Origin: Phallusia mammillata
Lineage: Eukaryota
DNA: 64,000 nucleotides
Assembly (NCBI GenBank): GCA_965637545.1
Contig: OZ281499.1
Span: 3,100,001-3,164,000, forward strand
Direction of reading: 5' to 3'
Below the pieces are notes generated by a model. The model did no database searches. It was not told where the DNA came from and was given only the letters and a program-made list of their open reading frames with translations. The position numbers and the translations under genes are program-made. How positions within the stretch are numbered: the stretch's first letter is position 1; the number at the start of each line of letters is the position of its first letter. Shown in pieces: positions 8,301 to 45,900 of this stretch.

Positions 8301-11300
8301 GACAAATTGTGCAATTTCGGTAAGTTTGTCCAAATTATTCATTAAACTGTGTAAGTATCTGTGCTCTGTTGTAGTACTAAGTTTACTTGCGCATATCTTA
8401 CTGTGTGAAATCCTTACCCTATTTGCACTATAAAAAAGTTGTGTAAATTACATTAATCACAACAGTTGGAAAAAGTTGGGTCGCCTGTAAATTCTGTTGG
8501 GTCGCCAGTTTTTGTGAAAATTAGAGCATCTACGTTTCGTAGCGTTATTTTGTTGTTTCCCAAGGCTGTTGTTTTCCCAATTGTTTCCAATGACAATTTC
8601 ATGACTATTTGGCGTGATAGTGAATTATTCTGTTTGTGACGTCATAATGTTTGTGTGAGATCACTGTTAAGCGTTGTCTGGCTCATAATGCGTTGAACCA
8701 GCTCTGAAGTTGGCGGAAAAACGAATAATGTTTGTGTGATGTGTTTTTTTCAAACTAGCGTAGTAATTTTCGAAAAACTTTCCTGTTTTACAAACAAAAA
8801 TACAACCAAACTAGCAAGAATGCATATCCATGGGTCGCGAGAAGCCACAAAACAAAATTTTGGTAAGTATTTGGGTCGCGACAAAAAATGGTTGGGAACC
8901 ACTGGTTTAGGTAATGAATTTTTTTTTGCAAAATCTAGAAAATCCAAACGTGGCTGAGCGTATGTTCTAGATGTTTGGAATAGCGTCCACGTTGTAAAGT
9001 TACCTAACATGGTCTTTTGCAAAGATGTAAGTTGTGCAGATTTCTTAACTTGAGCAACATTTAAGTTTATTATGTTTGGCACAAGTAATTTGTTATTGTA
9101 CCACCCCACAATCGCCATCGGAGTTTAAGTTCAAGCTTTTATTTTGCGTTTTCGTTGGGTAACGCTGCAGGCGTTTTATTTTTTTTCACAGTTTGAATTT
9201 TCATTTAAAGCCAATGTAAGCAATGAAACTACAGGTATAATTTTTGGCAAAGCGATACACACCAGCAGATAGAATGCTGCTTATCATTTCAACCAAAAAA
9301 TACCGGACCAAATCTCATAGTAATTCACGTGTAAAAACGTTTAACGTTAAAAGAAATAATACTCGTATTAATAGTGTCGGTTACCAGTTGGTTGATTGTT
9401 GTCAGTTTTTCTGACATCCCCTTGGTGTCGCTGCTTTGCCAACCCAGACCTTCCTTAGCTACGTCTTTTGCCCAGGCATGCAGTTCAAAATCTCTGCCTA
9501 CATCCTGTAAATGTGACAGTTTACAAGCACTTGAGATTATACGTGTAAGGCCCCGTAGAAACTGTAGGGATCGCCACCAACCGGATATACTGTGTAATAG
9601 TGTTTCAGAAAAGTGTAAAAGTTAACTTTGATTAGGCTAAGCATAAGTTTGATGACAGTACATTTTCTTCTCTGCTAAAGTTTATAAAAACCGTTTCAAA
9701 TGACAATATGTTAGACTTACACAAACGTTTTTGTCAACATGGCCTGCAAAGAGTATCTAAAGATGTTATACTAGATAATGTAGGGCATACGTTTTTTCCA
9801 ATGTGCGTTATTGATCGCTTGGCCAGTATGCGTTAATTTATTTTTCACTTATAGTATTTTTTGGTTTGTTATTTTATCTACTGTAATGGCCTTTTTCTTA
9901 CCACGTCGCTTTTGTAATAATGTCGAATTACGGAATTGACATATTTTTCCATAATTTTCCAATGTCCAACGACGTCGTTTCTGTATTGATAATTCGGCAA
10001 AAAATTGGGGTCGTCCGTTCCTGACACATAAATTGAAATACTTATTTTCTAATGCAAGAACAGGTTGTGTATGCCAAATCTCTCTCGGCTTTTCCTTCTG
10101 GTTTTGGCGTTGTATTTTGTTATGAGATAAACAACCTTTCTGGTTTTCAAATTAAAGTGAAAAATTAATTTGAAACGCTGGTTTAAAAAGTTGAAAGCAT
10201 TGGTATAAATGTTATGAATACTCCTACCGTTTTTCCTTAGTTGAAGTGGGATGTTCAAATCGGATAACTTGAACGTCCTGTAAGCCTTTCTTGCCAAATG
10301 CGCTGCAGCTGTAACAATATTTTGTAAGTGACATTATAACACATACGTTTCATTACATCCCGTCTTTAAACAAAGTAAAGCGTTTAACCGGGAACACAGG
10401 TATTCTTGACATTACAGTTAGCCTCTTAATTGATCGTCACAAGATTAGAATATATGTTTTTGTCGTTTCAACTTACAGACAAAGGCGGTTATTCGCATAT
10501 ATATATATATATTTGTTTAATTGCTTAGGTATGTCAAATTAGCCATTTGTTAACAAAATCTTCAAGGATATCTCTAAGTCAGTATCTCATAGATAATTGC
10601 ATTAAAAAACAAGGCAAATTAATCATGTGAAATTATTTATGATGCAGAAATGGTTTTATAACTTACATATGGAAATCCCCTGACTAGAGAGCGCATGTGG
10701 TGGAAGAAGGCTCGTTCTTACGTCAGTGTTCTTTGCCGGCACCATGCGGAGGAATGGGCGGAGAAGTTTAAATACTGGATGAGAGCGGGGTAAACATCGG
10801 AACACAGACACCGCGAAGGGCTCCAATACTAAGTGAGTGTCTAATAGGTTTTCGATCCACTGCAGAAGACAGTTACAATGTTTGTTATGTTTTGGAAAAA
10901 CAAATACCTGGATTTTACTGTTAAACAAATGTTGTGAAGAATTGTGTCATACCGTCCTTATTTCTGAAACTCGCCCCTTTTTTAATGGGCGGCGTTTTAG
11001 AAATATGGTTATCCTTTAACTACAGACAGTGCACACTGTTTCGACCTGTATAGTTCATCAGTGGGCGCATTGGTTAGTGTAGCCAACCAATATAGCCTAC
11101 CTCTCGACACCAGTTGCACTGACTGCAGCTTATACATAAACACCTTATAGGTCGAAACATGGTGCACTGTCTGTAGTTTATCATTTACTGGCTTGATGCT
11201 TTTTACATGGTTACCCTTCTCAAGAAATGTCCTTGTATTTAGCTCGCGCTTTGTTTTGTCCTTTTTTTTATTAACGTCCACAAATTTCTTCACCCCGGAG

Positions 11301-14300
11301 CAGTGGTTCTCAAACTTTTCAAACTATCAGCGCAGTAGCAAACTACTTTTTTATTCCGTGACACACTTCGTATGCCAATTTTGCAAAATGTTGTTGAAAG
11401 AAAATTAATTTGCAATTGTTATAGGTAGGGTTGATTTTTATCACCAACAAGTCCTATCTTATCAGAGAGTATATACACTTTTTGATTTAGCTAATATTTT
11501 TTGGCCCACAGTTTAAGAAGCACCGCCCCAGACGAATTATAGTAGCGCAGTAACTTGCGTGATGTGTATGGATACTAATGTTTCCTTGAAATTTAGCGTT
11601 TGGCACAAATCAATTGGTTGACATCAGTGACTTGAATACAAAGATTTGCTTATTTAATTCTATGTTTTTATTTTTGTTTTGTACAGTACCTGATGCATAT
11701 TGCTCTGTGCGCACCGGAAGTACATCTTGGCAAGCAGCCAATCCTCCTTCCGGTCGTTGGGAGTGAACACGTGATCCCGGCTACCAGGGACCAGTTGAAT
11801 TGCCAGAGGAACACATCTTCTCGAATTATTGACGTAAAACAGTCCGATACAGTCTTGACAGTGGAGGGGATTTCCCGTCGCGTAGTGCTTTACGCGGGGA
11901 ACGCCCTTCAGCGTTTCGTGAAAATCGGCGATGAAGATTTTTCCCGCCTATGTCAAAAAATTGAAATAACTTAAAAAGTAATCCCCGATTGTTATTTACC
12001 TTAGAAACAGTGGGAGAAATCAATTTTTTTGTCAGTCGATTCTATCACAAAAGTCATATTTTTCATCCTGTTCTGTTACAAAATCCATTTACATTAACCA
12101 GTAACGCTAACCGGTTCGCTGATCTCATAAAACTTCGTGAGACGGTTCTATAGAACCGGTGCGAACCGGCTGAATCCCACCACTGCTTAGAAGCTTAACT
12201 ATCTTTTATTCTAAAGCACCTTTTATTACATTGATATTGTAAAACGTCATACCCTTATTTCTCCTTCGATAGTTGTGTGGTCATCAAGGATCAAGGCGAC
12301 GTCCATGTTGGTAATTCTTGCGGTCGGAGGGATTGCATTGCAGCGTTTAAAACACAGAGGACTGACGCCATTGAGAACATGCTGAACAAAAGCCTTGTCG
12401 GTATACCAGCTGCAAATGCAAAGACTTTTCACTTGAACACGACTTGGTGCGCAAAATGTGTTGTCATTCGTGGTTCTTTAATCATTGCAGGTGAGCTTTT
12501 AAACCATACTGGCTAGGATAAACATATGTCATTTACTGGGATCAGCCCTATAGCGTTCCTGCACATCAGAGACCAACAATTAGGATACACTTATAAATAA
12601 ATCGTAGTACCTAACCCATATTGACGGCGTTGTATCGAATTCGAATCGAGCTGGTCTCTAAGACATCGTTTGGCTTCTGTCGTGGTTCGCATTCCACCAC
12701 CACCCTTTTCTGGCTTATATACCATCACATGGGAATGCTTGGGAGACCAGCTCGGTTCGGTACACCGCTTTCAATAGGCGTGGTGTACTGTGACTTAAAC
12801 TAAATTTAATCTGCGATCAGGAAACACTGTTAACTTACTCATTTAGGTTTGGTTGTTTTTCGCCTTTCGGTGGCAAACTCGCATAAAGAGCTTTATAATC
12901 TTCAAGTTTGTTGATGGATTTCGCTGTTTCTGTGATGTATATTATAGAAGTGGTTAAATGATTGTCAGGCAATGTTTTTGCTATCTTCCGTGTTTTAGTT
13001 TTAGAAATTCTAAGGTTCATAACCTCGCCGTTATTTTTTTAAGATTTGGTTGCTGTTGGGTTTGAATTTGACCACAAATAGACGATCCCACTATCTTGCA
13101 CCTAGTTGGGAATGAATTTGAGAAAAAATGATTTGCACCCAAACCAATTAAAAAAGTGCACTTGAATGCAACATGCTTAACAATTTGGGCTTTTGGTATG
13201 TTGGTGATGGATCTATCCAATGATTTGCAGCTGTCCAAATCTGGATCAGTGACCGACTTCTAATGTTATGTTAGTCGCTTTCAATTGATAGTGAAGGTAA
13301 AGTATGACTTTTTAACAAAAATCTTTTGTTCATATAAGACATTTTAATGCATTGTAGACAATTACATTGTGTATTGTAGCTCGTTGTGAAGCAATAGTTT
13401 TAAAAACCTAGCCCGAGGGCACAAATCAGTCTTTTTTGTGATTCCTTTTTAAAAGACTGGTGCAAACTACTATTACACACAACAAATTTTAATTTTGGCA
13501 TAACAAGTAAGTTGGCACACGGCGTAAACGAGTTGCCGACCCTTGCACTAAACCATCTACTTACTTCCTATGTCTTGAAAGACTGAATTTAAATCAATTT
13601 CAAAACCGGATCCAACGAAGTGGTTGGCGCGAATCTCGTCGCGTTGAAAAATTTTCGGCAACTGTTGGTACGTGGAAGCATTGACGTGACGAGGGAATCC
13701 CCACCCTATGTCAATGGGTTTGGGCATCGGAATCCACGCGAACTTGCTTCGGTTTTTCGCCACCTCTTGCAGGCGTAACTTCTTCACTTGGTTGTTGGTG
13801 ACATTTTGGGGAATGCAAGCTGAACGAATAATTTGTGTTGGATATGTTGGATAAATGTTCAAATTCAAGTCGCATGTGGAAAAGTATGACAAGACAACAG
13901 CTAAAACGGTATGATTTATTCCTAATTATGTGTCTGTCTTGCATTTAATGCTTGCACTTATATTAGCATGTGCTTTTCTCATGAAATGTTGTAAAAAATT
14001 CGCGTATATTGGTTTGAACAAACACTTTAATAATAACACACACAAGTATATTTAATTTAGTACGGCGCGTAAAAGGTTTAGAGAAGCAGTTCCCAACCTG
14101 TGTGGTGCCGTGACCCCCTTTTCTAAGATAACATTTGCTAAGTTGCGGTGAAGGACAAACTTAGTGGGCTACATATTAAAACTGACTGTATTTTTTTCTC
14201 AACAATAAAGTGGCCCATTATTGGGCTTAGTGGTCCATGGCCTCAAACAAGTTAAGAACCACTGCCTAAGGCGACTTCAGTTGGGGTCGCGACCCCAGGT

Positions 14301-15383
14301 TTAGAATCATGAAGCACCATTGTTACCAAAGCAGGATCTTTGTACTAAAAACACATGATATGGTACATGATACAATTGCGTAGGTTTAGCGAAACAAAGC
14401 CTTGTGGTTAACGACTTCCACCTCAACACGTTAGGTAATTGAGGTTTTTATTTATAAATCTGAGTTTGTTTGTTTCTTATTTCCATTTAGGATTATGTTG
14501 GATTTAATGTGGATTACATTACCTTCGCCTCGTGTCACTTCAACATTGGAATCTATCCAGTCATAAATCGGAAATTCAGCGAACTGCCCGTTGTACTCAA
14601 CCGTGACGAAATCGCATAACCACTCATCCGTTTCGCACCAGTTCAAAAGTTCTGACAAGAAAAGCACTGTATGTACTTACCTTTATTTCAGTACTACTAG
14701 AAGTTTGGTTATTTCAGGACTAACTTTCCGGCCTGTACGAAATCCGCTTCATACAACTTACTGAATCTGATAATTATTGGCAATCCTACGTCATCACACG
14801 TGATATCGTAAACGTCACGCTTGTCCTTGAACGTGTTGGCTTCGAATATGTTTTCCACCGCATAATATCCGCTCGGTTTTCCGTTTCCACCAACCAGTTC
14901 CAATTGAATTGCAAGGCGCGTAGTAGATTCGCACCCCGCTTTCGCTGTCTGAAAAGCGATTGTATAACTCATGGTGATACGCCGAACCACCGAAAAGGAT
15001 TCGGACCGAATTCAGTGTCCATTTCCGGAATCTAAAACACACGTCTTACACGGTGTTTGCAAAGATTCATATACTGTGATGCCAATAAGCCAGGTCATTA
15101 AATTCCGTACACCTTTTCAAATGCAGTGTGATTTGCATGTTGTAGATGCAGCGATTAGTAAATGTATTGCGCTGTAATTATCGGTCGATTGATTTCAGAC
15201 CATTAATCTACACAAACTTTATCAATAAACGGCATCCATATGTATATGGATTTGCGTTGCGAACTTGTGGTAAGTTACCCAATCGTTTTTTTTTTTTTTT
15301 TCTTGCTACACATTTGGGCATTTTCTTTTTGATCGACAACAACATACACTCACCACAATCGTAACTTTGTATGTAGTCTTCAT
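5361..15383 (-). CDS. LOX1: divergent ALOX5-like lipoxygenase (PLAT + LOX domain), 14 exons, 677 aa, iron-ligand His->Asn variant
   Basis: Exons 5'->3' on minus: 15383-15354, 14948-14762, 14651-14523, 13819-13565, 12929-12839, 12409-12253, 11947-11690, 10859-10667, 10308-10228, 10020-9902, 9504-9385, 7197-7063, 6085-5987, 5540-5361. All introns GT-AG with consistent phase. Motifs: MKTTYKVTIV, FPIYDW, WLLAK, PLAIQL, HQ-WIENLLDTH, HPVFKLL, QHAAVNSGQ, C-terminal PNSIAI*. Confidence 0.9.
6267..7010. mobile_element. hAT-type MITE in LOX1 intron 12, with a second element nested inside (~6360-6791)
   Basis: Perfect 8-bp TSD CCTTATAG at 6259-6266 and 7011-7018. Termini CAGGG...CCTG with subterminal gcgggcc motifs. 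The inner segment shares gatccttatttcac...gccgccaatt and ggccgc.ggttgt with the element at 46891. Confidence 0.8.
11301..11525. mobile_element. Degenerate hAT-type MITE (CAGTGGTTCTCAAAC terminus)
   Basis: Left terminus cagtggttctcaaactttt; degenerate right terminus gtttaagaagcaccg; TSD-like ccccggag/ccccagac. Confidence 0.6.
12008..12185. mobile_element. ~180-bp hAT-type MITE (family CAGTGGTGGGA...TCCCACCACTG), copy 1
   Basis: TSD cttagaaa/cttagaag; homologous along its length to 19658-19837. Confidence 0.8.
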
Positions 15384-16640: not shown

Positions 16641-19600
16641 TTAGATAGCAACGCTGTTTGGGATCCTGGATGGCAGTAAGTAGGTGTATGGGTGCACCAA
16701 CTTCTCGTTGCGAGCTTTTATCTTAGCTTCGAGCGCTTGTAGATCGCTCATGTAATTACGTTGGATGTCGAGAATGGTCTTTTCAGTGAAGAGACGTTCC
16801 GGAAATTGTCCAAGGAAAACCTGAACAATGGTTTATGCTTTTATATAGCTATGTTCGTTGCTGTTACGGTTCAAAAGCAAAATATTATTTCTGTAGTTGA
16901 AAATGGCGTTTAAACCAATAGTAACCAGTGACATGGGTAGTGTTCCACCTGTCAGGAAGCGTTGTTTCAGCACTTTAAATTTCGACCAAACAGCTTAGTT
17001 ATTTATTGTTAAAAGTGAAACACTTTACCCATTCCGTACATGTGTATATATTAGTTTGCTAAGTGAAGGTTACCTCGTCTGGCGAGTAATCAGAAAGTGC
17101 AAACAACACTGCAATGATAGATGAAGCCATCACCGAATCTGGGAGACTGTCCAAAATTCTTTGTTTGTTGGCCTAAACATTGCACAAAATGATATGAAAT
17201 CAATTTAAATAGTATAGCACAGGGATTGCCGACGAGGATAAACCACGTGTGTCTGAGCAATTTCCCGCCTTTCTGGAATCTTTATTTAGTCAATAATTTA
17301 TCTGCTCTGGTTATTGTCATCTGAGTGCAATCTACACTGATTCAGATGCTATTTACCTGTCCGTTTTTGTGTGGAGGCAGACGCATAGCAAGAGGGGAAT
17401 TTGGGACGAACTTGTAAGTCTCGAACTGACCAAAATTGACAGCAGCATGTTGCACAGAACTTGTGAATATCAGTATGACACAAATTTCAATCTATAAAAC
17501 ACAAGAGAGAAAAGCTATAGTAAGTTATGCCCACTAAACAAACAAAACGTTCGTTTTCCTGCTTAATACTTGCCCATGGAAATCAGTGAAATGTACGCAA
17601 AAAATGCTTACGTTACTAGTTATAATTAAACTAAAATCTTGAGGTCGTGTCTTTGAAAAAGCCTTATATATGTTAATGCGTTATTTCATTAAGGTGTATT
17701 TAACTTTACGCTAACGTATCTAGTAAAAAGTCCATGTCACCATTTGCTAAATTATTTGCTGTTTTCCTTTTCTCAATCTCCAATTTAAATAACAAAGAAC
17801 AATGTTGAAGTAACAGTATTAGGAAATGCTTCTCTCACCAGTTGATCGACTGAAGTCAGGTTTTCTGGCATTCCCTTTGTATCGTTGTCTTGCCAACCTA
17901 GACCCTCTTTGGCGACATCTTTTGCCCAAAATTGCAGCTCGTAGTCGTTGACAACGTCCTAAAAGTTCGAAGATATTTCGTGAAATACTTGCACAATAGA
18001 CACTTTTGTTAATTAAAGTTTGAAATATTAATGAGATCCTAAACTGAGGTTTTGCCTAAATTTTAACACTGAACCTCCTAAGCTTTGTAGCTTTGGATTC
18101 TATCTTAAACCTACCTCATCACACTTGTAGTAGTGACGAATGCATGCACTCGCGTATTTCTCCATGATCTTCCACTGGTCAAGTGCATCGTCTCGGTAAT
18201 AGTAGTTGGGCAGAAGAGTTGCATCGTCCGTTCCTGCGAAAGCGTTTGGATGTTTAAAAAATAGCATCCTGATATTATGCTGTTGTATGTCTACTTGACA
18301 GTGAAGGAAAGCTTACCGAATTTTTTGAGCATGTTTGGAATGTGAAGGTTTTGGATGTTGTACGTTTTGTAGATTTTCTTTACCAATGCAAGTGCACCTG
18401 CAAAAAATATCCATTATCCCAGGTAAGATACACTCTAAAAAAAATGAGCGAAATTTGAGCGAAAAATTCTGCGAGTGAAACAAAAGCTCACTTTAAACGA
18501 GTGAACAACTTTACTCACTGATTTGAGTGAATAAAAGACTAAATTTGCAGGGTTTTTGGTCTTTATTTCACTCATTGGTTTGAGCTATTGAAAGAAGCAG
18601 GTGCTGTGTGGTTGGTTCTTATTTTGCTCACCTTTCAAGCAAATACACATTAAAAACATCACAATATGTTCACTGGTTTATTTTTCTGGGCACAAATGAA
18701 CACACCAACACAGTTGTTACATCACAGCACTAAGAGAATGGAAACTGGTCTGGATCATATATTCGTCCAACGACGACCAACAATGGCTGACTGAGTTTGA
18801 CTTTTGACTTGTTCAGGGCATATTCAGCAATGTTGTTGCCGGCCTGTAAAAACATCAGAGCTAGTGAGGATGTTTTATACTGTACAACTATATTTTAATC
18901 ACAGCAAATGATAATCCAGAAAATATCAGGGATTGGGAACTTACTGAAAAATAAACTTTGAACAAGCTTTGGTTTTGCTAAAAAAACAATTATACTTACT
19001 TGCATCACGGGCTAATCTTTACCACTTACAGTCTTTGCAAGTAGATCCACATTTGAAAGGACAATTAGAAATGTCAATGTTCATTAACTTTATTGTTTTG
19101 TTTTATGAATATTGTACATTTATGCAGGAAATTTTTAATAAAAACAAGACCACAAAATAAATCCTAAAAACATACACAATATATAAGTACAAGAAAATAA
19201 AACGACTTACTTCTCATTTTCTCCTCAATACTATCGTCAATTAACTGTTGATCCTTTAGAAACAGAAGCGGCTCTTCAATGCCAAACTGTGAAATATCTG
19301 CTTTGGACACTTTGTATGCAACGCTAGCCTATGGTGATATCTAAGCCCAACTTGGCCTCGTTTGGTAATTCACGCCATCCAAACCCTATCCCGCAGTTTT
19401 GCGCAATAGATGTGACTGTGACGTAATTCAATTTCATTCCCCTCGCTTGCGCCAGCCAATCACGTTGTCGACTTCGGAACGCGCGATTTTGAAAAGAGAG
19501 AAAGGTTCTCTCGTTTCGCCGCGAAAAAAGGTTTGAGCGAAAATTTCACTTCTTTCCAGACGAAAGACTGGAATTTCGCTCGCCGCCTCCCGCCGGGGAG

Positions 19601-22600
19601 AAGAAATGAGCGAAGTTTTTTTAGAGTGTACGCTTTGCCAAAATTGCAGTCTATACCCAGTGGTGGGACTCAAATTTTTTGTCAGTCGGCTTTATCACAA
19701 AAGTCATATTTTTTAGCCGATTCTGTTACAAAATGTCCCTTGGCAGTAACCAGTAATGCTAACCGGCTCGGTGATCTCATAAGATTTCATGAGACGGTTG
19801 TATAGAATCGGTGCGCACCGACTGAATCCCACCACTGTCTGTAACTTTTCACATAGTTTCATATTACACATACCTACATGTAACAAGGTGTGTAACATTC
19901 TATGGTTTGTCATACGTAGACTTGGCAACCTATAAATCCAATGATACTTACTTGTGGAAACCCCCTTTCCCGCTAAAGAGTCGGGTGGTAAAAGAGTGTC
20001 CCTTGCGTCATTGTTGATACACGAAACTGAACGAAGGTGGGGACGCAGCAATTTGTAAATCGGATGAGCACGAGGCAAACATCGGAATAGCGCCACAGCG
20101 AAAGGTTCTGTTGCAGCGTGTGTCTCCATGTGATGATAGATCCACTAGAAACAAAACATCAATGGTAGATGTTTCAATTACATAATTAAAAATGTCATGA
20201 GCTGTCTTTAATTATTAAAAAAATCTTGATTTGCTGGAATTGTCGTTGAATTTAAATTTTTACTCATAGCAGAAATTGTTTTGTTCCAATTCTGTCACAC
20301 TTAACGAAGAGTTGTACTAGCTTGCGTCCAGTCGTTGCTTTATGCATTACCAGTGTAGTGCTTTGAAATGTACGGATCTGTTCATAAGTTTAAAGGTAAA
20401 AATAACGGCCCAAATAGGCGTTAAAAGCGACATGCTTTATTGTTCAAACGTTTTGACAAATGCTCATGCCATCATCAGTGATATGAAGACGACATCAGTG
20501 TAGTGCTTTTTACCAAATAATAAGTAACTATAAAACGGTGATAACCCTTCAAAAAACTGGACTTTATCTAACCTCGTGCATGTTGCCTTGTGAACAACGA
20601 AAGTACATCTTGGCAAGCAGCCAATCCTCTTCACTGTCGTTGGGTGTGAACACGTGATCAGGGCTACCGGGAACCAGTTGAATTGCCAAGGGCAGAAATT
20701 CACCTTTGTCGTTTACGTAAAAGAGTCCAATGCATTCAGGACAATTAAGTGGTTTTTTTGTTCTGTAGTTGTCAACTCTTTGGACTCCTTGAAATACTTC
20801 AGTGAAGTCAGCAATGTAGATTTTACCGGCCTGTTGTAAATGTCAGATGTTTTACAGTTATGTTATTTATTGAACCAAGATATTTTGTCTTCTGATTTTT
20901 AAAAGGATACAGTTCTGTCGCTAAACACCGCCTTTACATTACAATCTAAGTTGCTGTTTACAAAATGTATGAAAAGACGAGGGTTGGCCTACTTTCCCTT
21001 GTGCCCTTTCCCTTCTTGTAGTAGGCTATAGTTTAATGTTTTTGATACATTTGACAATGGACAGTTACACGGAGACTGAAATGCTTTGTACCTTCATTTC
21101 ACCTTCCAGCGTTTTGCCTGTTCCAAGTGTCGTATCTACGTCACTGTTCATGATGTCACAGTTTGATGGCAGTGATGTGCAACGTTTGAAACAAAGTGGG
21201 GCCACTCCGTTTAATGTTTGTCTACCAGTGCTTTTGTCCGAAAACCAACTGTAAAAGAGCAAAGTATACATTACACCGAAATGGTGTTTTTTGAACCTGA
21301 CTTGCAAAATGTAGTCTCTATGTACTGGTGTTAAATAATAATTACGCCTCACATACTCCATGGCGCATCTAGTGTTCCGTGTGGTGAACTGCGCTATTTC
21401 TACGTGGCAGTTGGAACACATGTAGTTAATGCTGTGAGGGCACATGCAACTTTCCTCTATTCTCAAAGTATTTCTTGTTCTCAAAGTTCTCAAAGTATGG
21501 GTCGCGACCCAAACATGGGTCGCGCAGCGTCAAAAAATGGGTCGCGCTATGGTGATTCAGTTCTGCCCAAACGAACTTTTTTCATTTCATTTTTAAAGTA
21601 TTTTTAATTCTCCATCATGACTGAATTATTGCATCATTATTGCTTCATCTCAGTAACTTGGAGTATTGCATCATAAGTGGTTTTCTGAAAGTTTTGATGG
21701 CAGAGTATAGCCATAGCCAAGTACAGCCTCACTCAACCACGTTGTACAGTAAAATAAACCAACCATTACCGCTTACATACAATAGCCTTCCAATTTTACT
21801 GTTATGCACGTGGTGATTGTAACGTCATAGCACGGGAAATAATAGGACAAGTTAATCATGCGAAACTGAACTTGGAGATGTAACAGTTAGCGTTCAAGGA
21901 TGAGTTAGTATTCGTACAAGGAAAAAAATACATTTTTGTTGTTTGAGGCTTGGGTCGTAAGATGCACATAAAGTTCAGATTTGGGTCGCGCTCAAAAAAG
22001 TTTGAGAACCACTGCTCTAAGGTTTGATCAACTTTTTTTACTTTATAATAAAGGCAAGTCTATAGCCGACCGAACCACAAAGACGTATAACACTTACTCA
22101 TCCAAATACATTGGGTCTTCTCGTAGCAGTGACTCGTGTTTGTATATCGAGTGATAATCTTTCAATTCGTCGATTGGGGACATGATTCCTGCAATAGAAT
22201 GAAACAACTGGAGTGTTGATATTTCTGCAATTGTTCTTATTTTGGTTACAACTGGTTAATTAGTGAATAGTCTAAAACTTGTTAGTTCATGTTTCAAGAA
22301 TTTTGTGGTCCGTTCACGACTGTTGTCACACACACCGTACACGACTGTTGTCAAACCCAGTCGCGCCACCTTTAGTCCCACTCGTTTCTCAAAGCCAGAT
22401 TTCAACCTTCTCAGGCCTTTACCAGATTCAAGGTGTACACAACAAAATGAAGTGCATTTTTTCTTTGCACCATCATAACAAAAATCCTTGTCCCAAAATC
22501 CCATCATTTACCCTAAAGACAAGATGATTGGCATAACTTACTTTGAATGGTATTGAGTGCAGAGGTGGATATTGCTTTCAGAACGCTTCCCATGAAGTGA

Positions 22601-24332
22601 GTGGCCTTCACTCTGTCCTGCCGAAATATTCTGGGAAGTTCACGGCGCGTTGCACCTTTGACGAAACGAGGAAGTCCCCAATTCATGTCACTCTCATTCG
22701 GTATTGGAACCCATTCGAATTTCTTCAAATTTTCCGCTATCTCGTCAATACGAAGTTTCTTTACCTTCGGGTTTGTGACATTTTGAGGAATTTGAGCTTG
22801 GAAAATAATAACACGTTTTATTGTTAAATGTCTGCAAAAATTGAAACCCGGTCAAATGGCAACTAACGGTCCCTAAATTTGTCTTATCTTTTTAGGAAAC
22901 TTTAAACAGTAGACCCCGCAATTGGTAGGCTTGAGTGATTGCCAAATAATCTTGGAGCACTTGCGTGTCAGCGTGTCAGCGCGTACTGAAAAACATTCTC
23001 ATGGAAAAAAGTCCAATTAACCCCCTATCCAGTTTTACAAAAGGGCGCTTTTACAAAATGTTGCTGATTTTAATTTTCCAAACAGTTTTACAATCAAATC
23101 AGCAACACCAGACCGAGCAGCCAGAATATCGTCTATCTCGTTGACTTGAATAAGCGCATAAGCTCTGCTGAATAGCACCCAAGTTTTGTGTTAACAAAAG
23201 ATTTTTGGTTCAATGGCGAAGTCAGGGCCAAAATCGTAAAAGGATGAAAATTTGGTCACCAAATCTTTCCTCAGTGGGGTATTAAGGAGTTTTTTGACGA
23301 TCGCGCGCAATCGTGCTTTTAGTCTATGGACCACCAAGTCAGTTAAAAGCAGAATCGAGGACAATACCGTTTAAGCATTCACAGCAAACATCTTTTCTGC
23401 TGAAATTTTTTCCTTACCTTCTCCTCTGGCCACATCGATTGTAGTTGTAATCCAATCATAGATGGGAAACTCTGCCACTTCAATACCCTTTTCCACTTTA
23501 ACCATATTGCACATCCATTCATCTTCACCAAACCAAGATGACAGCTCTACAATAAAACTAAATGCTCACTTTTGCATAAATGACCATGTAACACGTATAA
23601 AAAATGTTTTAGCATTTGTAAAAGCGCAAATTTTTGTCATTTAAAACGGTATATTTAATAACTTACTGAATCGAATGATTATTGGTAGACCGACGTCTTC
23701 GCAAGTTAAATTGTAAACATCAGTTTTTCCGGGCTCGAAGTCGTCATGCAGGAATTTATCGAGCTTTAGCCAGTCGGTGGTGACGATGGTGGCGTCCTTC
23801 TCCCCAACCATCTGAAGGGACACTGTGGCGTTTGTGCCAGCCTTATTGGTCGCATCTGAGGTCTGCCCAAATAAAATTGATATTTTCCAACCGGATAGGA
23901 AACGTTTTAGATTTTGTGCTATTGCCCTTTTCCATCAAATGCAGTTCTTGAAACTAGCTAAACAAACGATGTTGGTTAAACTGTAAGCTGCGGCGTAGCT
24001 TTTTTGATACAGATTGTGTGGGTTGATATCAAGGCCGCTTACAACTAATGACATGCTGATATTGTTTCTAGCCTCCCGCGTTTTTTATTTATTCATTTAG
24101 AACTCTTTGTAGATGTAGACATTGTACGCCAACACGCCTTTTGCTAGCATGATATAATAGCACAAATGATACAGCTATTTGCTATCGTTAACCAATCTAG
24201 CATTACAACATGCGGCTTACTTTTTTAACACCACATCATGTGGCTTACCATCGTGAGATTTCGGTATTTGCATTTAATCTTGCTCACATATGTTATTCAA
24301 CTTACCGACACTGAAACTCTGTAAGTAGTCAT
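16641..24332 (-). CDS. LOX2: ALOX5-like lipoxygenase, 14 exons, 679 aa, canonical iron ligands
   Basis: Exons: 24332-24306, 23862-23667, 23546-23418, 22796-22542, 22188-22098, 21248-21092, 20830-20573, 20144-19952, 18397-18317, 18233-18115, 17958-17839, 17491-17357, 17172-17074, 16820-16641 (2040 nt). Motifs [41 protein letters not shown]. Confidence 0.93.
18431..19628. mobile_element. ~1.2-kb non-autonomous DNA transposon, EnSpm/CACTA-like, in LOX2 intron 8
   Basis: TIRs CACTCTAAAAAAA / TTTTTTTAGAGTG flanked by TA on both sides; repeated subterminal TGAGCGAAA/TGAGTGAA motifs; no transposase ORF. Confidence 0.75.
19658..19837. mobile_element. ~180-bp hAT-type MITE, copy 2 of the 12008 family
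   Basis: TIRs cagtggtgggactc / gaatcccaccactg; degenerate TSD tctatacc/tctgtaac. Confidence 0.8.
21460..22014. mobile_element. hAT-type MITE (tgggtcgcg subterminal repeats, GTTTGAGAACCACTG right end)
   Basis: Repeated gggtcgcg motifs at both ends. The same kind of right end occurs at 8870-8904. Left boundary approximate. Confidence 0.6.
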
Positions 24333-32100: not shown

Positions 32101-32503
32101 CCAGTCGGTGGTGACGATGGTGTTGTCCTTCTCCCCAACCATCTGAAGGGACACTGTGGCGTTTGTGCCGGCCTTAATCGACGTATCAGAAGTCTGTGTA
32201 AAAGAAGATGATATCCTTTCTCAAAAGTTCTACTTGCTATTAGCTTATTAGAAGCTGACGAATTTTACTGAAAAACATGTCCTGCGAAAAATTCAATCAT
32301 AATTGTTTAAAGCTTTTGCTCATTCGTTTTTTTGACATTGCTTATAGTTCTACGAGGCATCAACGGAACATTTTGGTGCAATTACTTATTTGACGTCGTT
32401 TAATAGGAAATTAAACAAACAAATTCGACTTGCATTTAGCGTTAGACTTGCTCACATATTTTCTTTAACTTACCGACACTGAAACTCTGTAAGTAGTTTT
32501 CAT
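26180..32503 (-). CDS. LOX3: ALOX5-like lipoxygenase, 14 exons, 680 aa, canonical iron ligands
   Basis: Exons: 32503-32474, 32193-31998, 31658-31530, 30391-30137, 29744-29654, 29581-29425, 29217-28960, 28901-28709, 28300-28220, 28115-27997, 27735-27616, 27347-27213, 26951-26853, 26359-26180. Motifs [25 protein letters not shown]. Confidence 0.93.
28394..28680 (+). mobile_element. tRNA-derived SINE in LOX3 intron 8
   Basis: Pol III A-box-like TGCCCAAGTGG (28400-28410), B-box-like GGTTCTAATCC (28437-28447), then tgtgtttccttgagcaaggaactt resembling the conserved SINE core motif, and a (CAAA)n tail near 28667-28680. Confidence 0.65.
30500..30690 (+). mobile_element. Possible 3' fragment of an RTE-like LINE
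   Basis: Translates, with one frameshift, as ...EEIAKDR/EKWNNLAAQCAQECGKL*. This resembles the A-x-D-R-x-x-W C-terminal signature of RTE-type ORFs and is followed by a TAATAA tail. Confidence 0.35.
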
Positions 32504-34502: not shown

Positions 34503-34637
34503 GCGTAAGCGGACAAAAAAGCACGATGATATTTATATAACTGCCAGATCAAACCCATCAAATGTTAATATATAATGATGCAAATGTATGTCTTTAATTT
34601 TGTCCTATTTCATTCAATAGCAATGCTGTTTGGAACT
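34503..34637 (-). pseudogene. Relic stub of a LOX terminal exon (last ~8 codons, VPNSIAI region) plus 3' flank
   Basis: 34614-34637 tcaatagcaatgctgtttggaact matches the LOX4 stop region with one base deleted. 34503-34610 matches the LOX5 3' flank at ~42840-42948. Confidence 0.75.
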
Positions 34638-35533: not shown

Positions 35534-38500
35534 TCAAATAGCAATGCTGTTTGGAACTCTGGATGGCAGTAGGAATTTGTAAGGGTAATCCAAACCCTCG
35601 TTGCGAGCTTTTATCTTAGCCTCAAGCGCTTGTAGATCGCTCATGTAATTATGTTGGATGTCGAGAATGATCTTTTCTGTGAAGCGGCGCTCTGGAAATT
35701 GTCCCAAGTAAACCTGAACGACAACTTGGCCTAAGTTTTTGGCAACATAAATGCCACACTATTGTCAGAGGCTTGATTTGGTTTGTTCATTTTTATCTCC
35801 CAATTTATTTACATTTAAATTAATTAAATTATTCGTTTAAGTCAGTGGTTCCCAACCGGTGTTACGTTACTACCTACTTTAACAAAGCTTTGATTACCTC
35901 GTTGGGTGAATACTCAGAAAGTGCAAACACCAATGATATAACAGACCCAGCCATCAATGAATCTGGGAGGCTATCCAAAATCCTTTGTTTGTTTGCCTAA
36001 AAGTTAAAGCTCTTATAAAAACATGGAAATGTGAGGTTTTGTTACCTTCTCTGCAAACCGTTATTTTCTTAAATATTTCCTTAAAAACCTGTTTTTGAAA
36101 TGTATGTATTTCGGTGAGCTTTTTGGGCTTATTTACTTGAAGTTTATGTTCTTTTATGGTGACTGGCATAACTTCAGTGTTTTACCACCTAGTAAAGTCA
36201 TAAAAATTTTTACTCACCTCTCCCTTTTTGTGTGGAGGAAGACGCATAGCAAGCGGTGCATTTGGGACGAACTTGTAAGTCTCGAACTGACCAAAATTGA
36301 CAGCAGCGTGTTGCACAGAACTTGTGAACATCAATATGACACAAATTTCAATCTATAAAACACAAAATTGCAGTGTTGTTGAGTTTGTACTTAGAAATTA
36401 TGGGAAAAGATTTTTGTCGGCAGAAATAATTTATATTGTTATCAGTTCTTCAAATCACAGTTTTCTTTTCACAATCACCAATCAAAGAGGGGAAAACGAT
36501 GCGCAAACATGTAGATTTTAGTTGTTAACCTTTGAAAACAAACAAGATTAAACAATTCCCAATTTAGATGACGCTTTTGGTGCAGTTTAGAAATGTTTCT
36601 CACCAGTTGATCGACTGAAGTCAGGTTTTCTGGCATTCCCTTTGTGTCGTGGTCTTGCCAACCGAGACCCTCTTTGGCGACATCTTTTGCCCAAAGTTTC
36701 AGCTCGTAGTCGTTGACAACGTCCTCAAAGACAAAAATTTATTTACGGCACTTAAGCAGCACATCTTAAATCAATCATGTTTCCACTTCCTTACAAGAAC
36801 CATTAAATGCACCATTAAATAAAAGTGTCCAACTCTACAGAGAGTTTGGATGAACATGTCACAATGCGCAATTTCAAACGGTTCCATACCTCATCACACT
36901 TGTAGTGATGACGGATACAAGCACTCGCATATTTCTCCATGACCTCCCAGTGGTCAAGTGCATCGTCTCGGTAATAGTAGTTAGGCAGAAGAGTTGCATC
37001 GTTCGTTCCTGCAAAAATGTTTTGTTGTTCTGTTATTGTCCCTAACATAGACCGTTAGAAAACCTACCAAATTGTTTAATCATCTTTGGAATGTTAAGGC
37101 TTTCGATACTGAACGTTTTGTAGTGTTTTCTTGTCAAGGAAAGCGCCTCTGCAAAGATAAATATGTAAATGCATCATACATTGACGTAAATTCTTATGGC
37201 GTTTACTTGTGGAAATCCCCTTTCCAGGAAGAGCCTTCGAGGGCAAGAGCGCAAGTTTTGCGTCATTGTTGATGCACGAAACTGTACGAAGGTGGGGACG
37301 CAGCAGTTTGTAAATCGGATGAGCACGTGGCAAACATCGGAATAGAGCCACACCGAACGGTTCCATACAAGCGTGCGTTTCCAAATAGTTGTAGATCCAC
37401 TAAAAGTGTGAACGGTAAAACAGGGCGGATATTTTTTACACACGTCAGGGTTATAAAGTTCTGCTTTTATCCACATATCCCACCGCAGCCTAGATTTTTC
37501 TAGCCTACGACCAGCCATATGGGGATGCTTGGTGACCGGCTGATTAAATGGGCCTGGAGTACTATGATTGTTACATATGTGTGTCATGATCACTGCATCG
37601 ACGTTTCATGGCTGATCCCAGCTATTATTCTATGCTTTATATAAAGTCGAAGTTTTGATACGTTTTATTTACTATTTGGTTAAAACGGTTTTGTCATATT
37701 AGTGCTGTACCTTCCTTTTATCATCTTAGCTTTGTGAATTCACCTGATGCATGTTGCTCTGTGCACACCGCAGGTACATCTTGGCAAGCAGCCAATCCTC
37801 TTCGCTGTCGTTGGGAGTGAACAGGTGATCACGACTTCCAGGAACCAGTTGAATTGCCAAGGGCAGAAATTCACCTTTGTCGTTTACGTAAAAGAGAGCA
37901 ATGCACTCAGCACAGTAAAGTTGCTCCATTCTTTCGACTCCGTTGAAGACTTCCGAGAAGTCAGAAATGTAGATTTTGCCGGCCTGTTAAAAAATGTCAT
38001 AACTCAAGAGGTATTTTAAGTTGCTAACTGTTTTAATTAGAACTTTAACTTGCATGTGCGGTCTTATAACCTAATTTGTACCTCCATTTCACCGTCCAGT
38101 GTTTTGTCTGCTCCAAGAATCTTATTTACGTCACTGTTGATGATGTCGCAGTTTGCTGGCAGTGACGTGCAACGTTTAAATGAGAGTGGGACGATTCCGT
38201 TTAGTGTTTGTCTACCGGTGCTTTGATCCGAAAACCAACTGTGAAAACAAAACCACAAGATCCTGAAAAAAGCCTTCTCAAAACGAACCAAATATTCCTG
38301 TTTCTATTTACTTACTCATCCAAATTCATCGGGTCGTTACGTGTCATGGATTCGTGCTTGTACAACGAGTGGTAATCCTTTAACTCTTCAATAGGCGACA
38401 TGATCGCTGCAATATTAGATTATTTTTCTGTTTTCATTCGCTTCAATCTTTTTGATATTTAGTTTCAAAATGAAACAAAATGAATTCATAATTTTTGTTT

Positions 38501-41174
38501 TTCAGGTTAGTTTTGGCGGTGTTGTTTTAATAAAAACGTAGCATTGTGTTATACGAAAACTTATGTTTAGCACGAATAAATACAGACAAATCTGCTAATA
38601 ATATATTTTATTGAGGCTTTCAAACTTACAATGTTCCTTTAACAAATGTCATTTAAAGCTTCTTCGGAAAACAAATTAAAATGTTTTGAAACCTTTCATG
38701 ACACTGCGTGTATTACTATTTGTGGATATGGAGGCGTTCCAATTTTATAGTTGACTTGGTGGGTCGAAAACAAAAGCTTTAGTAAGCATTGCCCTAAGCC
38801 CAAAATCTTCACATGACTTACATTTGATGGTGTCAAATGTAGATCCGGCTACTCCAGACAGAGCTGCGCCCTCGGATTGAGTAGATTTAACTTGGTCCTG
38901 TTGATATATTCTCGTCAGTTGAAGGCTGTTGGCACCTTTGACGTAACGTGGAAATCCCCAGCCGCTGTCACCGTCCGTTGGTTTTGGCATCCACTTGAAC
39001 TTGTCAACATTTTCGCGTATCTCATCGATGCGAAGTTTCCTTACATTCGGGTTGGTGATGTTTTGAGGGAGTTGAGCTGAAAAATGTGAACTGTATAGTT
39101 TCGTTGTCACTGCAAATTTGGTTAACAAACAATTTTGTTGGTTGTTGACCTGAAGGAAACAGTTCGTTTATTTCGATTGTTGATGAAATTATACTGAACT
39201 CTAATCTTTGTCCCGGGAGACTTTGTTTGTGTTTTATTGTGTTTTATTTACAGTATTTTTCTTTTATGTGTGTTTTATCCTTGGTTTATTGGAACTGAAC
39301 ATGCCATGTATGCCGGTCAAATGACCAGAGTTTGATACTGTTCAGTTCAGTATAATCACTCTTGGGACCGTGGTCCCAAAAGAAAATTGCTTTATTCTCT
39401 TGAAAAGTGTTGAAAAGATTTGTAACAAGGCAATTCGAGCTTGACTTGAATGTACCACATGACAAATATGAGTAGTGCCCATAGAATAGTACATAAAGCC
39501 AACAGGTGTTATTGCACTACGGCCCATGATTGAAAGCCGTAGAGACGGCCTATGATTGAAAGCCGTAGTGGTCAATAAAGCGAGTTGGAGGAGTTGCGGA
39601 AACGCTCTATTAATGCATAACACATAGAAATAAGTTATCGGGCTTTGTACGCATTGCCCAATTTTCAAAACGCAATTATAAATGTTCATATAAGTGACTA
39701 TTGATTGATATGGGAACGTTAAGAACAAATCAAGCGAAAAGACCGTATCATAACACGCCTTATAAATGTCTTTCGTGAAGAAAAAATGACCTTATGGTAG
39801 AATGACACTGACATATCAAATAGAGTGGTTGGAATCAAAATAGTGGCGCAGTTACGGAAATTGGTCTGCAATACTGCTTCAGAATGTCTTTCAGCGCCAA
39901 GTTTTTGTTGTTTTTGAGGGGAGTAATGGGCCATTGTACCTTGTCCACGCCTTCGTTGGAATTTCCTTAATTAAGAAAACCAATTTATCAGAACGGTTTC
40001 TTGCAATTTCGTCTAAGCCAACATTTACAGCAAAGGAAATGAAATCAAAACATATCAAGTATCTGTCACTTTTTTTATTTAAGTGTCATTTTGAATGAGA
40101 TAGCTGAATAAAAACTTTAGTGAATTCCATGCAAGAATTCTATGTACAGCAATCATTAAGTTTTTCTCGAGGCAGTGTAAAACTGTACGACTTTGTATGG
40201 GCTACCATAATCTACAAATAGACAGAAAGTAACTTGGCTTTACTTAAGTTACAGTGGGTTTAGGAAACAAATTAAACAAATACTTCACTGAACCTTCTCC
40301 TCTGGTCACATCTATTGTAGATGTTATCCAATCATAGATCGGGAACTCAGCAGTTTCCTTATCGTATTCCACTTGAACCATGTTGCACATCCATTCATCC
40401 TCACCACTCCACATTGACAAATCTGATCGTTGTTAAAAATAGAAAAGACGAATGAATATTACAATGATTCTTTTTAGGCATGTTAAAAACCACAAACCGT
40501 TCTTTCGACCCACTGGTAATTCAAAAACTCTTTGTTTAGCAATAAATATTGCTTAACGAATATTTAATTTTTTGAAAGAAAAGTCTAAAACTAATTAAGC
40601 AACAGAAATGGATCCTTCTCATACCTAAGTTTTTTTACTCATAAATTGTTAAAACATGTTTTGTTAACAGTTGAAACCAAGTTTAAAATAGTTTATTAAA
40701 GCACATATTTCTTGCCACATTAAAGTTTATGCATAACTCACTGAATCGAATGATGATTGGTAGACCGACGTCTTCGCAAGTTAAATCGAAGACATCAGTT
40801 TGTCCTAGCTGAAATTCTTCAAAGAACATTTTATCTAGTGTTAGCCATTCGGTGGTGGCGCCGTTCTCACCGACCATCTGAAGGTATACGGTGGCGTCGG
40901 TACCAGCCTCTTTGGACGCTTCAGAGGTCTGTTGAAATGAACATCTTTTATCAAAACGTTTTAATCGCTAATTAGGAACCGGGAACGCCAAACACCTTTG
41001 CTAAAACAAATGGTTCTGTAAATATGTTAACGCAGTTTTACAATGGCATTTTTTTACATAATGCAAGACTATACATCAACATGAGAAGCTTTTTTAAATG
41101 CGCTTATGTTTGTCGTTATTCTTGGTAACCTACTTTATTTAACTTACCGTCACTGAAATTTTATATTGATTCAT
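35534..41174 (-). CDS. LOX4: ALOX5-like lipoxygenase, 14 exons, 670 aa, iron-ligand His->Asn variant with a 6-aa in-frame deletion in exon 7
   Basis: Exons: 41174-41148, 40928-40742, 40422-40294, 39076-38822, 38406-38316, 38238-38082, 37983-37744 (240 nt vs 258 in paralogs), 37399-37207, 37148-37068, 37008-36890, 36723-36604, 36352-36218, 35996-35898, 35713-35534. Exon lengths keep the frame. Motifs [25 protein letters not shown]. The exon 11 acceptor is an uncommon GAG. Confidence 0.85.
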
Positions 41175-42948: not shown

Positions 42949-45900
42949 TCAAATAGCAACGCTGTTTGGAACCCTGGATGGCAACAGGAAGGTGTAAGGG
43001 TGCTCCAACTTCTCGTTGCGAGCTTTTATCTTAGCTTCGAGTGCTTGCAGATCTTTCATGTAATTCTGTTGGATGTCGAGAATGATCTTTTCTGTGAATC
43101 GACGCTCCGGAAAATGTCCCAAGTATACCTGAACAACAATTTTGTTATCGAAGTTTTGTTACCGATCATACAAATCCACGTTGCGCAGCGTTATTCTCAC
43201 AACAAGTTCATTGTCCAACTGCCTGCGTCATTGCAACGCACTAGCGGCGTTTATTATGTTCGTTTTGCTCTAAAAGAATGTTCTGTGAATTACCCAATTA
43301 GGTCAATATTCCGTTTTAGTGTTGTTTCGAATAACGTCAATTATTCCATTAGGTGAATCACCGTTTAACCGGTGATACGCGTACCACCGTTTGGCAACCA
43401 CTGGTTAACGCCTTTTCTGCCAATCGACTTTTGGTCAAACAACTTTCGCTTGTTAACAGTACCCACATAATCAAAGAAAATGGTGACAGACTTTAAGAAA
43501 TATTATTGATGACTTTTACCAAGCAATGATTACCTCGTTGGGTGAATACTCAGAAAGTGCAAACACCAATGATATAACAGACCCAGCCATCAATGAATCT
43601 GGGAGGCTATCCAAAATCCTTTGTTTGTTTGCCTAAAAGTTAAAGCTCTTATAAAAACATGGAAATGTGAGGTTTTGTTACCTTCTCTGCAAACCGTTAT
43701 TTTCTTAAAAACCTGTTTTTGAAATGTATGTATTTCGGTGAGCTTTTTGGGCCTATTTACTTGAAGTTTATGTTCTTTTATGATAACTGACATAACTTCA
43801 GTGTTTTATCACCTAGTAAAATCATAAAAATTTTTACTCACCTCTCCCTTTTTGTGTGGAGGAAGACGCATAGCAAGCGGTGCATTTGGGACGAACTTGT
43901 AAGTCTCGAACTGACCGAAATTGACAGCAGCGTGTTGCACCGAACTTGTGAATATCAGTATGACACAAATTTCAATCTATAAAACACAAAATTACAGTTT
44001 TGTTGAGTTTGTACTTAGAAAATATGGGGAAAGATTTTTGTCGGCAGAAATAATTTATCTTGTTGTCATTTCTTCAATCACTTGTAGTTTCTTTTCACAA
44101 TCACCCATCAAAGAGGGAAAAACGATGCGCAAACATGCAGATTTTAGTTGTTAGCCTTTGAAAACAAACAAGATTTAAAAAAAATCCCATTTAGATAACA
44201 CTTTTGGTGAAGTTTAGAAATGTTTCTCACCAGTTGATCGACTGAAGTCAGGTTTTCTGACATTCCCTTTGTGTCGTGGTCTTGCCAACCGAGACCCTCT
44301 TTGGCGACATCTTTTGCCCAAAGTTTCAGCTCGTAGTCGTTGACAACGTCCTCAAAGATAAAAATTTATTTTATTTACGGCACTTAAGCAGCACATCTTT
44401 AATCAATAATGTTTCCACTTCCTTAAAAGCACCATTAAATGTGCCAAACTTTACAGTGAGTGTGAATGAATATGTCACTATTCCCAATTTCAAACGGTTC
44501 CATACCTCATCACACTTGTAGTAATGACGGATACAAGCACTCGCATATTTCTCCATGATCTCCCAGTGGTCAAGTGCATCGTCTCGGTAATAGTGGTTAG
44601 GCAGAAGAGTTGCATCGTTCGTTCCTGCAAAAATGTTTTGTTGTTCTGTTATTGTCCCCAACATAGACCGTTAGAAAACCTACCAAAATGTTTAAACATC
44701 TTTGGAATGTTAAGGCTTTCGATACTGAACGTTTTGTAGTGTTTCCTTGTCAAGGAAAGCGCCTCTGCAAAGATAAATATGTAAATGCATCATACATTGA
44801 CGTAAATTCTTATGGCGTTTACTTGTGGGAATCCCCTTTCCAGGAAGAGCCTCCGAGGGCAAGAGCGCAAGTCTTGCGTCCTTGTTGATGCACGAAACTG
44901 TACGAAGGTGGGGACGTAGCAGTTTGTAAATCGGATGAGCACGAGGTAAACATCGGAATAGCGCCACAGCAAAAGGTTCCATGAAAACGTGCGTTTCCAA
45001 ATAGTTGTAGATCCACTGAAAGTGTGAACGGTAAAACAGGGTTGATATTTTTTTCACACCTCAGGGTTATAAAAATTCTGCTTTTATCCATATATCCCAC
45101 TGCAGGCTATATATTTCTAGCCGACGCCTTGACATACGGTAAATAATACTTGGTGACCGACTGATTTGAATCAACGCCTTTAATAACCCTGGCGTACTAT
45201 AACTGTTATATGAGTGTGCCGTGATCGCTGGTCTGCATCGACGTTTCGTGCCTGATCTCAGCTATTCATCTATGTCTTAAATAAAGTCAAGGTTTAGACA
45301 CGTTTTACAAACCTTTTTGATAAATCAGTTTTGTCATGTTAGTGGTATGTGAATTCACCTGATGCATGTTGCTCTGTGAACACCGCAGATACATCTTGGC
45401 AAGAAGTCAAGATACATCTTGGCAAATTCATAATTTTTGTTTTTCAGGTTAGTTTTGGCGGTGTTGTTTTAAAAAAACGTAGCATTGTGTTATACGAAAA
45501 CTTATGTTTAGCACGAATAAATACAGACAAATCTGCTAATAATACAAATTAAAATGTTTTGAAACCTTTCATGACACTGCGTGTATTACTATTTGTGGAT
45601 ATGGAGGCGTTCCAATTTTATAGTTGACTTGGTGGGTCGAAAACAAAAGCTTTAGTAAGCATTGCCCTAAGCCCAAAATCTTCACATGACTTACATTTGA
45701 TGGTGTCAAATGTAGATCCGGCTACTCCAGACAGAACTGCGCCCTCGGATTGAGTAGATTTAACTTGGTCCTGTTGAAATATTCTCGTCAGTTGAAGGCT
45801 GTTGGCACCTTTGACGTAACGTGGAAATCCCCAGCCGCTGTCACCTTCCGTTGGTTTTGGCACCCACTTAAACTTTTCAACATTTTCGCGTATCTCATCG

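Follow-up and report, generated by a model that had tools for sequence, protein, structure and literature searches.

Lipoxygenases (LOX) of the PLAT type, such as the coral 8R-LOX of allene oxide synthase-lipoxygenase and human ALOX5, are two-domain proteins. Their iron ligands are regarded as invariant, with the first ligand His being a standard target when dead mutants are made. Within the LOX fold, ALOXE3 (epidermal lipoxygenase-3) is a hydroperoxide isomerase, an example of a paralogue in which another reaction has replaced ordinary dioxygenase activity. The iron ligands of ALOX5 are His367, His372, His550, Asn554, and Ile673 (PMC5113960), and engineered H367N/H372N/H550N Alox5 is without activity (PMC9672960). 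Here, we analyzed a 64-kb stretch of the genome of the ascidian Phallusia mammillata (contig OZ281499.1, positions 3,100,001 to 3,164,000; called the window, with positions counted from its first letter). The window contains seven LOX genes, LOX1 to LOX7, arranged head to tail and all on the minus strand. In three of them, LOX1, LOX4, and LOX5, the first iron ligand (ligand 1) is replaced by Asn.

For the exon models, tblastn hits of an ascidian LOX anchored an alignment of the seven copies, in which the conserved AG/GT boundaries were read. The canonical gene has 14 exons, numbered here e0 to e13; exons 7 and 8 of the initial annotation of the window, which had drawn attention to the substitution, are e6 and e7. 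The ligand-1 codon is AAC, encoding Asn, at 10850-10848 in LOX1 (WIENLLDTH), at 37390-37388 in LOX4 (WIYNYLETH), and at 45006-45004 in LOX5 (WIYNYLETH), which has it from the LOX4/5 ancestor. LOX2, LOX3, LOX6, and LOX7 read W-I-x-H-x-x-E-T-H at the same site, and a single base separates the AAC of LOX4 from LOX3's CAC, the 27-nt context being otherwise the same. The last codon of the preceding exon, e6, is CAG in LOX1 (11690..11692), LOX4 (37744..37746), and LOX5, giving HQ, and GAG in LOX2, LOX3, LOX6, and LOX7, giving HE. The variable residue aligns without gaps with His499 of soybean LOX-1 (phmmer against the PDB) and with the His of the ALOX5-type HQTITH motif (MAFFT family alignment), confirming its assignment as the first iron ligand. 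All three copies retain the four other ligands, namely the second His, the His and Asn of HAAVN, and the C-terminal Ile, and the second-shell Gln of HAAVNxGQ is strictly kept in LOX1 and LOX4. The observation that AAC is paired with HQ while the other ligands are kept was thus borne out. The set of iron ligands (His, His, His, Asn/His/Ser, and a C-terminal Ile/Val carboxylate) is incomplete in LOX1, LOX4, and LOX5, their ligand 1 being Asn, and the metal site of LOX1 and LOX4 is predicted to be Asn-His-His-Asn plus the C-terminal carboxylate. It is exceedingly improbable that this pattern is an artefact, with AAC codons created by assembly or sequencing errors or with a misaligned exon in which another His serves. 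We reject sequencing or assembly error, since three loci share the AAC codon and the Asn state recurs both in RNA contigs from other studies and in a cDNA protein in the public databases. In addition, the nine-residue motif contains no His besides the second ligand.

These features suggest that LOX1 and LOX4 may well be retained lipoxygenase-fold paralogues that are catalytically impaired or re-purposed, a reading to which we attach middling confidence. Two lineages independently exchanged the ligand-1 His for Asn and, four positions upstream on the same helix, Glu for Gln, the latter probably as a coupled second-shell adjustment after the His loss. Since H367N 5-LOX is used as an enzyme-dead protein (PMC9672960), we infer a loss of ordinary fatty-acid dioxygenase activity in LOX1 and LOX4; they would have been kept in a non-catalytic role, such as lipid or partner binding, or in an altered one. 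Of the features by which a pseudoenzyme is recognized, loss of a required residue was found in both genes, and an intact gene under purifying selection was found for LOX1 and in part for LOX4.

The number of events behind the three Asn codons follows from the relationships among the copies, for which we obtained the tree (LOX1,(LOX7,(LOX2,((LOX3,(LOX6,(C4a,C4b))),(LOX4,LOX5))))), C4a and C4b being two copies on another contig. Identity between LOX1 and LOX4 in e7 is 62%, and their introns are unalignable, so the Q...N combination arose twice independently. The initial annotation had left open whether it arose twice or was transferred by conversion; the former holds, and passage between LOX1 and LOX4 by conversion is ruled out by the same data. 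LOX4 and LOX5 are sisters with 89-96% nucleotide identity, introns included, so their Asn represents a single event. Three loci do carry Asn, as had been described, but one of the "three paralogs" is a deleted, frame-broken duplicate of another, which leaves two events.

This duplicate, LOX5 (42949..48172), contains e0-e3 and e7-e13. In place of the 687 nt found at 37796-38482 in LOX4, it has 14 nt (45410-45425), and it consequently lacks e4, e5, and 188 nt of e6, i.e., exons 5, 6, and most of 7 in the previous numbering. The HQ reported to precede WIYN in LOX5 exists but sits on a 52-nt remnant of e6, which together with the deletion junction occupies 45359..45425 on the minus strand. Splicing of e3, which ends in phase 1, to e7, which starts in phase 0, causes a frameshift with 10 stops in the joined reading. 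A rescue via the e6 remnant was rejected upon inspection by eye, as its two AG sites give the wrong phase or an immediate stop. LOX5 is therefore an unprocessed pseudogene that originated as a recent LOX4 duplicate.

We then asked how the ligand-1 state relates to the residue four positions upstream across the genome (240 Mb), in which a search recovered at least 23 copies of the ligand exon, e7. Among the 23 LOX copies scored, HE with His occurs in 13 and HQ with His in 4, the latter belonging to one clade, whereas HQ with a residue other than His is found in LOX1 (Asn), LOX4/5 (Asn), L009 (Arg), and L015 (Arg, with the second His changed to Asn). Hence, four of four independent losses of the ligand-1 His adjoin Gln and never Glu, and in an e6+e7 tree each non-His lineage has HE+His sisters. 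When the five Glu-to-Gln changes were placed by branch length, the probability that all four His-loss branches are hit was ~1e-4, a rough value, given that the underlying tree covers only 105 aa with weak support and that relaxed branches accumulate more changes. HQ by itself is ordinary, being present in the ALOX5 type, in soybean LOX-1, and in the four canonical copies mentioned above. The two positions lie four residues apart on one helix, so direct contact between them is plausible from the sequence. The covariation, previously called suggestive on the basis of two lineages, is stronger than had been noted.

The remaining ligands of the degenerate copies elsewhere in the genome differ from case to case. 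L009/L021 (C6:3214800-3224700, C6 being the contig of the window) has Arg at ligand 1, keeps HSAVN, and ends in Leu. L015/L022 (C6:27030300-27040200), with Arg at ligand 1 and Asn for the second His, reads HSLLS. L016/L023 (C2:7903500-7913400) has Lys at ligand 1 and Tyr for the third His. The tblastn pieces of all three are stop-free.

LOX1 (5361..14972), a divergent paralogue, is intact, with 13 exons encoding 675 aa, an ATG within the first PLAT exon, AG/GT at all introns, and no internal stop. Its exons match PF00305 in a Pfam scan in which exons were searched singly (cut-off, 23.6 bits): e7 scored 31.6 bits in LOX1 and 48.4 bits in LOX4, and e11 of LOX4 scored 31.8 bits. The PLAT domain (PF01477) was matched by e1 of LOX4 (35.5 bits), and e1 of LOX1 gave no match at E<=0.01 in this single-exon scan. 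Branch dN/dS ratios (omega), a check that the initial annotation had proposed, were estimated under a branch codon model with our own likelihood script, which sums over ancestors; e13 was left out. The omega of the LOX1 branch was 0.117, significantly below 1 (p=2e-37), against a background of 0.223. LOX1 is an old gene under strong purifying selection.

The LOX4 model (35534..41174) is intact and comprises 14 exons, e0 (41174-41148), e1 (40928-40742), e2 (40422-40294), e3 (39076-38822), e4 (38406-38316), e5 (38238-38082), e6 (37983-37744), e7 (37399-37207), e8 (37148-37068), e9 (37008-36890), e10 (36723-36604), e11 (36352-36218), e12 (35996-35898), and e13 (35713-35534). They encode 670 aa; the 670-codon frame is unbroken, and none of the 26 splice dinucleotides is disrupted. 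We compared the region 35500-41200 with RNA contigs from two runs, X8 of a 2017 study and X12 of a 2020 study. In these contigs, every one of the eleven junctions from e2/e3 through e12/e13 was seen as a joint, including 37399|37744, which links HQ to WIYN, and those using the weak e10 acceptor and the weak e2 donor. The RNA piece covering e7 differed at one of 193 nt and showed no T>G at 37390, the change that would make CAC and thereby undo the substitution. Furthermore, LOX4 residues 75-670 align without gaps to the public cDNA protein CAB3221299.1 (596 aa) at 96.3% identity, and this protein carries HQ, Asn, and the LOX4-only exons with a 6-aa deletion. Together, these results establish that LOX4, a young gene, is transcribed and is spliced as modeled from e2 to e13. 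RNA data thus documented LOX4 in two studies, but LOX1, whose expression was also to be checked, is represented by just 2-3% of its words in putative RNA runs.

At its 5' end, the expressed LOX4 may depart from the model. CAB3221299.1 begins at Met75, which lies inside e2, after e1. In an X8 contig, e2 is spliced not to e1 but to a cryptic upstream exon in intron 1, whose 3' end (40498..40514, minus strand) is followed by a donor GT at 40497-40496 and whose frame contains a stop and no ATG before Met75. As e0 and e1 in addition appear in unspliced contigs only, the known LOX4 product lacks residues 1-74, or half of the PLAT domain. Those unspliced contigs, from X8 and X12, span e0, intron 0, e1, and 64 nt of intron 1 (40678-41200) at a depth roughly double that of the spliced exons, and an X8 contig leaves LOX4 at 40678, with GT next, into 394 nt absent from the window. 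They represent a separate or aberrant transcript.

Two further observations concern LOX4 introns and splice sites. The non-consensus e2 donor (GTTCAG/GTTCGG) and the GAG acceptor of e10 are common to LOX4 and LOX5 (LOX4 exons at 40294-40422 and 36604-36723), and both are used in RNA contigs. In intron 6, a 33-nt piece (37477-37509), with a similar stretch in intron 6 of LOX5, reached a depth of 236 in run X3. The idea that LOX4 is transcribed only as the host of an intronic small RNA was ruled out, since intron 6 had no Rfam match and the 33-nt piece belongs to an interspersed repeat, of which the genome has at least 712 candidate copies.

Selection on LOX4 is less easily read than on LOX1, as gene conversion is at work in the array. 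Exon e13 is homogenized throughout the family, LOX1 and the C4 pair included (5361-5540, 16641-16820, 26180-26359, 35534-35713, 42949-43128, 49295-49474, and 56651-56830 in the window, plus L017 and L018 on C4). In this exon, the identity of LOX1 with LOX6, LOX7, and the C4 pair amounts to 92-94%, compared with 45-75% in other exons. This pattern is concerted evolution by gene conversion, extending to another contig. Exons e7, e9, e10-11, and e12 show other donor-recipient pairs, and identity is mosaic by exon, from which we conclude that gene conversion is frequent in the array. On the LOX4/5 stem, omega was 0.455, higher than the background (p=6e-4) and lower than 1 (p=4e-4). It was 0.33 on the LOX4 tip (below 1, p=0.05) and 0.43, not significant, on the LOX5 tip. 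The extra amino acid change of the LOX4/5 lineage sits in e0-e3, and omega in e4-e12 was 0.18-0.26, like that of canonical pairs; outgroup-polarized substitution counts are indicative only.

Several points weigh against the retention of LOX1 and LOX4 as selected paralogues. For LOX1, dS is saturated on its branch, and its words are scarce in the putative RNA runs, as stated above. For LOX4, the tip selection test is marginal, and conversion from functional neighbors can mimic purifying selection. The e2 donor (GTTCAG) and the e10 acceptor (GAG) are weak, e6 has an in-frame 18-nt (6-aa) deletion around 37900, and the Arg of INxxAR, kept by LOX5 and all other copies, is Lys in LOX4 only (37283-37285, e7); the public cDNA protein has both the deletion and the Lys. 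A joint between e0-e1 and e2 was seen in no contig. These traits also fit early decay. Moreover, CAB3221299.1 is a mosaic, LOX4-like in e6-e8 (11/11 diagnostic residues) and LOX5-like in e9-e13 (13/13), and may derive from another haplotype or from a chimeric transcript assembly. Finally, no Asn-bearing orthologue was found for either gene in the collections searched, including full-length ascidian protein searches; such orthologues in relatives had been suggested as a check.

In an alternative reading, LOX1 alone would be functional and LOX4, although transcribed, would be in early decay like LOX5, with His-to-Asn in the LOX4/5 ancestor as the inactivating hit and the low omega produced by conversion. 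The doubled omega of the stem relative to the background, the already broken LOX5, the weak splice sites, 6-aa deletion, and Lys of LOX4, the loss of 74 N-terminal residues from the product, the confinement of e0-e1 to unspliced contigs, and the exon-mosaic identity all agree with such a course, as does e1, in which 3/3 differences between LOX4 and LOX5 are non-synonymous. We nevertheless consider it rather doubtful. A decaying gene is at odds with the intact frame and splice dinucleotides, with a stem omega significantly below 1 and a lower one on the LOX4 tip, and with the correct use of the e2-e13 junctions in two independent RNA data sets. In addition, the Asn codon persists in LOX4 despite conversion tracts from the His-bearing LOX3 in the same exon.

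A second alternative accepts that both genes are retained and supposes that LOX1 and LOX4 are still catalysts. Lipoxygenases use Asn as their fourth iron ligand in any case, and a site of the Asn-His-His-Asn type might therefore retain both iron binding and turnover, which also counts against a loss of catalysis. The Asn side-chain oxygen would bind iron or another metal, the weaker ligand field would shift the redox behavior, and Glu-to-Gln would tune the site, making the proteins hydroperoxide isomerase-like, lyase-like, or dioxygenases with a changed specificity. The retention of four of five ligands and of the second-shell Gln is in line with this proposal, and so are the background-level omega of the catalytic-domain exons of LOX4 and the omega of 0.12 of LOX1. 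The occurrence of Gln in all four His-loss lineages, with no drift to other residues, likewise suggests that the pocket is still under selection. On the other hand, H367N 5-LOX serves as an inactive mutant (PMC9672960), LOX1 departs from the clade at sites that are otherwise invariant (RPHL to RPFL, HAAVNF to HAAVNS, and YYYRDD to YQYRND), and other copies in the genome have lost two ligands, which looks like a general trend to non-catalytic forms. Altered chemistry thus seems possible but not probable, and we favor the view that LOX1 and LOX4 are retained paralogues with impaired or re-purposed catalysis. The initial annotation had spoken of an enzyme/pseudoenzyme system, for which we obtained no indication, as nothing shows an interacting pair.

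The four canonical neighbors all have HE and His at the ligand site. LOX2 (16641..23862) and LOX7 (56651..62705) are intact from e1 to e13; LOX3 (26180..32503), also intact, is the nearest relative of LOX4 in e7 and e12; and LOX6 (49295..54022) is intact and served as the reference for exon boundaries. Open frames with AG/GT at every intron were found in LOX1, LOX2, LOX3, LOX4, LOX6, and LOX7. In phmmer searches against the PDB, all matches were lipoxygenases, the best being plant and animal enzymes. The nearest public proteins are from ascidians (Clavelina and Ciona) and are named "allene oxide synthase-lipoxygenase protein-like." Two public P. mammillata cDNA proteins match genome copies, CAB3221299.1 corresponding to LOX4 and the other carrying the motif of copy L007. 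L017 (C4:21355600-21365500) and L018 (C4:21338700-21348600) are two intact HE+His LOX of the same young clade and are sister to LOX6; their presence on another contig implies that the array seeded copies elsewhere in the genome. Altogether, the window contains part of a lineage-specific, gene-converting tandem array of ascidian PLAT-lipoxygenase genes.

Outside this species, the next database relative of LOX4 is 57% identical. With exon 8 (e7) alone as the query, two fragments only were recovered (56-60%), owing to the length window, and the best match in a representative search was 59%. LOX homologues with degenerate sites also occur in other tunicates and in cnidarians. A literature search combining lipoxygenase and pseudoenzyme returned incidental co-occurrences only, none describing such a protein. 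It is conceivable, although we deem it unlikely, that ascidian LOX have repeatedly evolved selection-kept members with degenerate metal sites, in which Glu/Gln and ligand 1 form a coupled pair, and that LOX1 and perhaps LOX4 are the mildest of this undescribed class. Under that scenario, they would either perform new chemistry at a natural 2-His/2-Asn/carboxylate iron site or bind lipids without catalysis and regulate their canonical neighbors.

The same ligand change has occurred twice in nature, each time with a Glu-to-Gln neighbor and with the gene left intact. This paralogue set makes it possible to ask how much of LOX function needs the full iron site and what the second-shell Glu/Gln does. 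It is also a practical one, with LOX3 and LOX6 as controls, LOX4 one base away from LOX3 at the ligand codon, and LOX1 old and constrained. It also adds to the indications from this genome that non-catalytic lipoxygenase-like proteins may be a real, overlooked class. At the same time, the array calls for caution, as a pseudogene is among its three Asn-bearing copies and conversion obscures tests of selection in arrays of this kind.

With the canonical animal PLAT-lipoxygenases, coral 8R-LOX and human ALOX5, the array copies share the two-domain family, as judged from Pfam-matched exons, along with the second His, the His and Asn of HAAVN, and the C-terminal Ile. They differ in the Asn at ligand 1 of LOX1, LOX4, and LOX5, in the lack of a PLAT match in e1 of LOX1, and in the absence of residues 1-74 from the known LOX4 product. 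ALOXE3, unlike LOX1 and LOX4, keeps the canonical iron ligands; ALOXE3-like matches are just 38% identical to the ascidian clade, and beyond the shared family we found no sequence link of ALOXE3 to LOX1 or LOX4. LOX1 and LOX4 belong to a young species- or family-specific clade without an orthologue in the searched databases. L016/L023 of the same genome lacks two of its His ligands, whereas LOX1 and LOX4 each lack one, replaced by a residue that is able to bind metal. A further parallel is provided by the engineered human and mouse 5-LOX variants (H367N, H372N, and H550N), in which the same change affects the same aligned position. Those proteins are enzyme-dead controls made in the laboratory (PMC9672960), whereas the change described here is natural, arose twice, is accompanied by Glu-to-Gln four residues upstream, and, in LOX1, has been kept under purifying selection.

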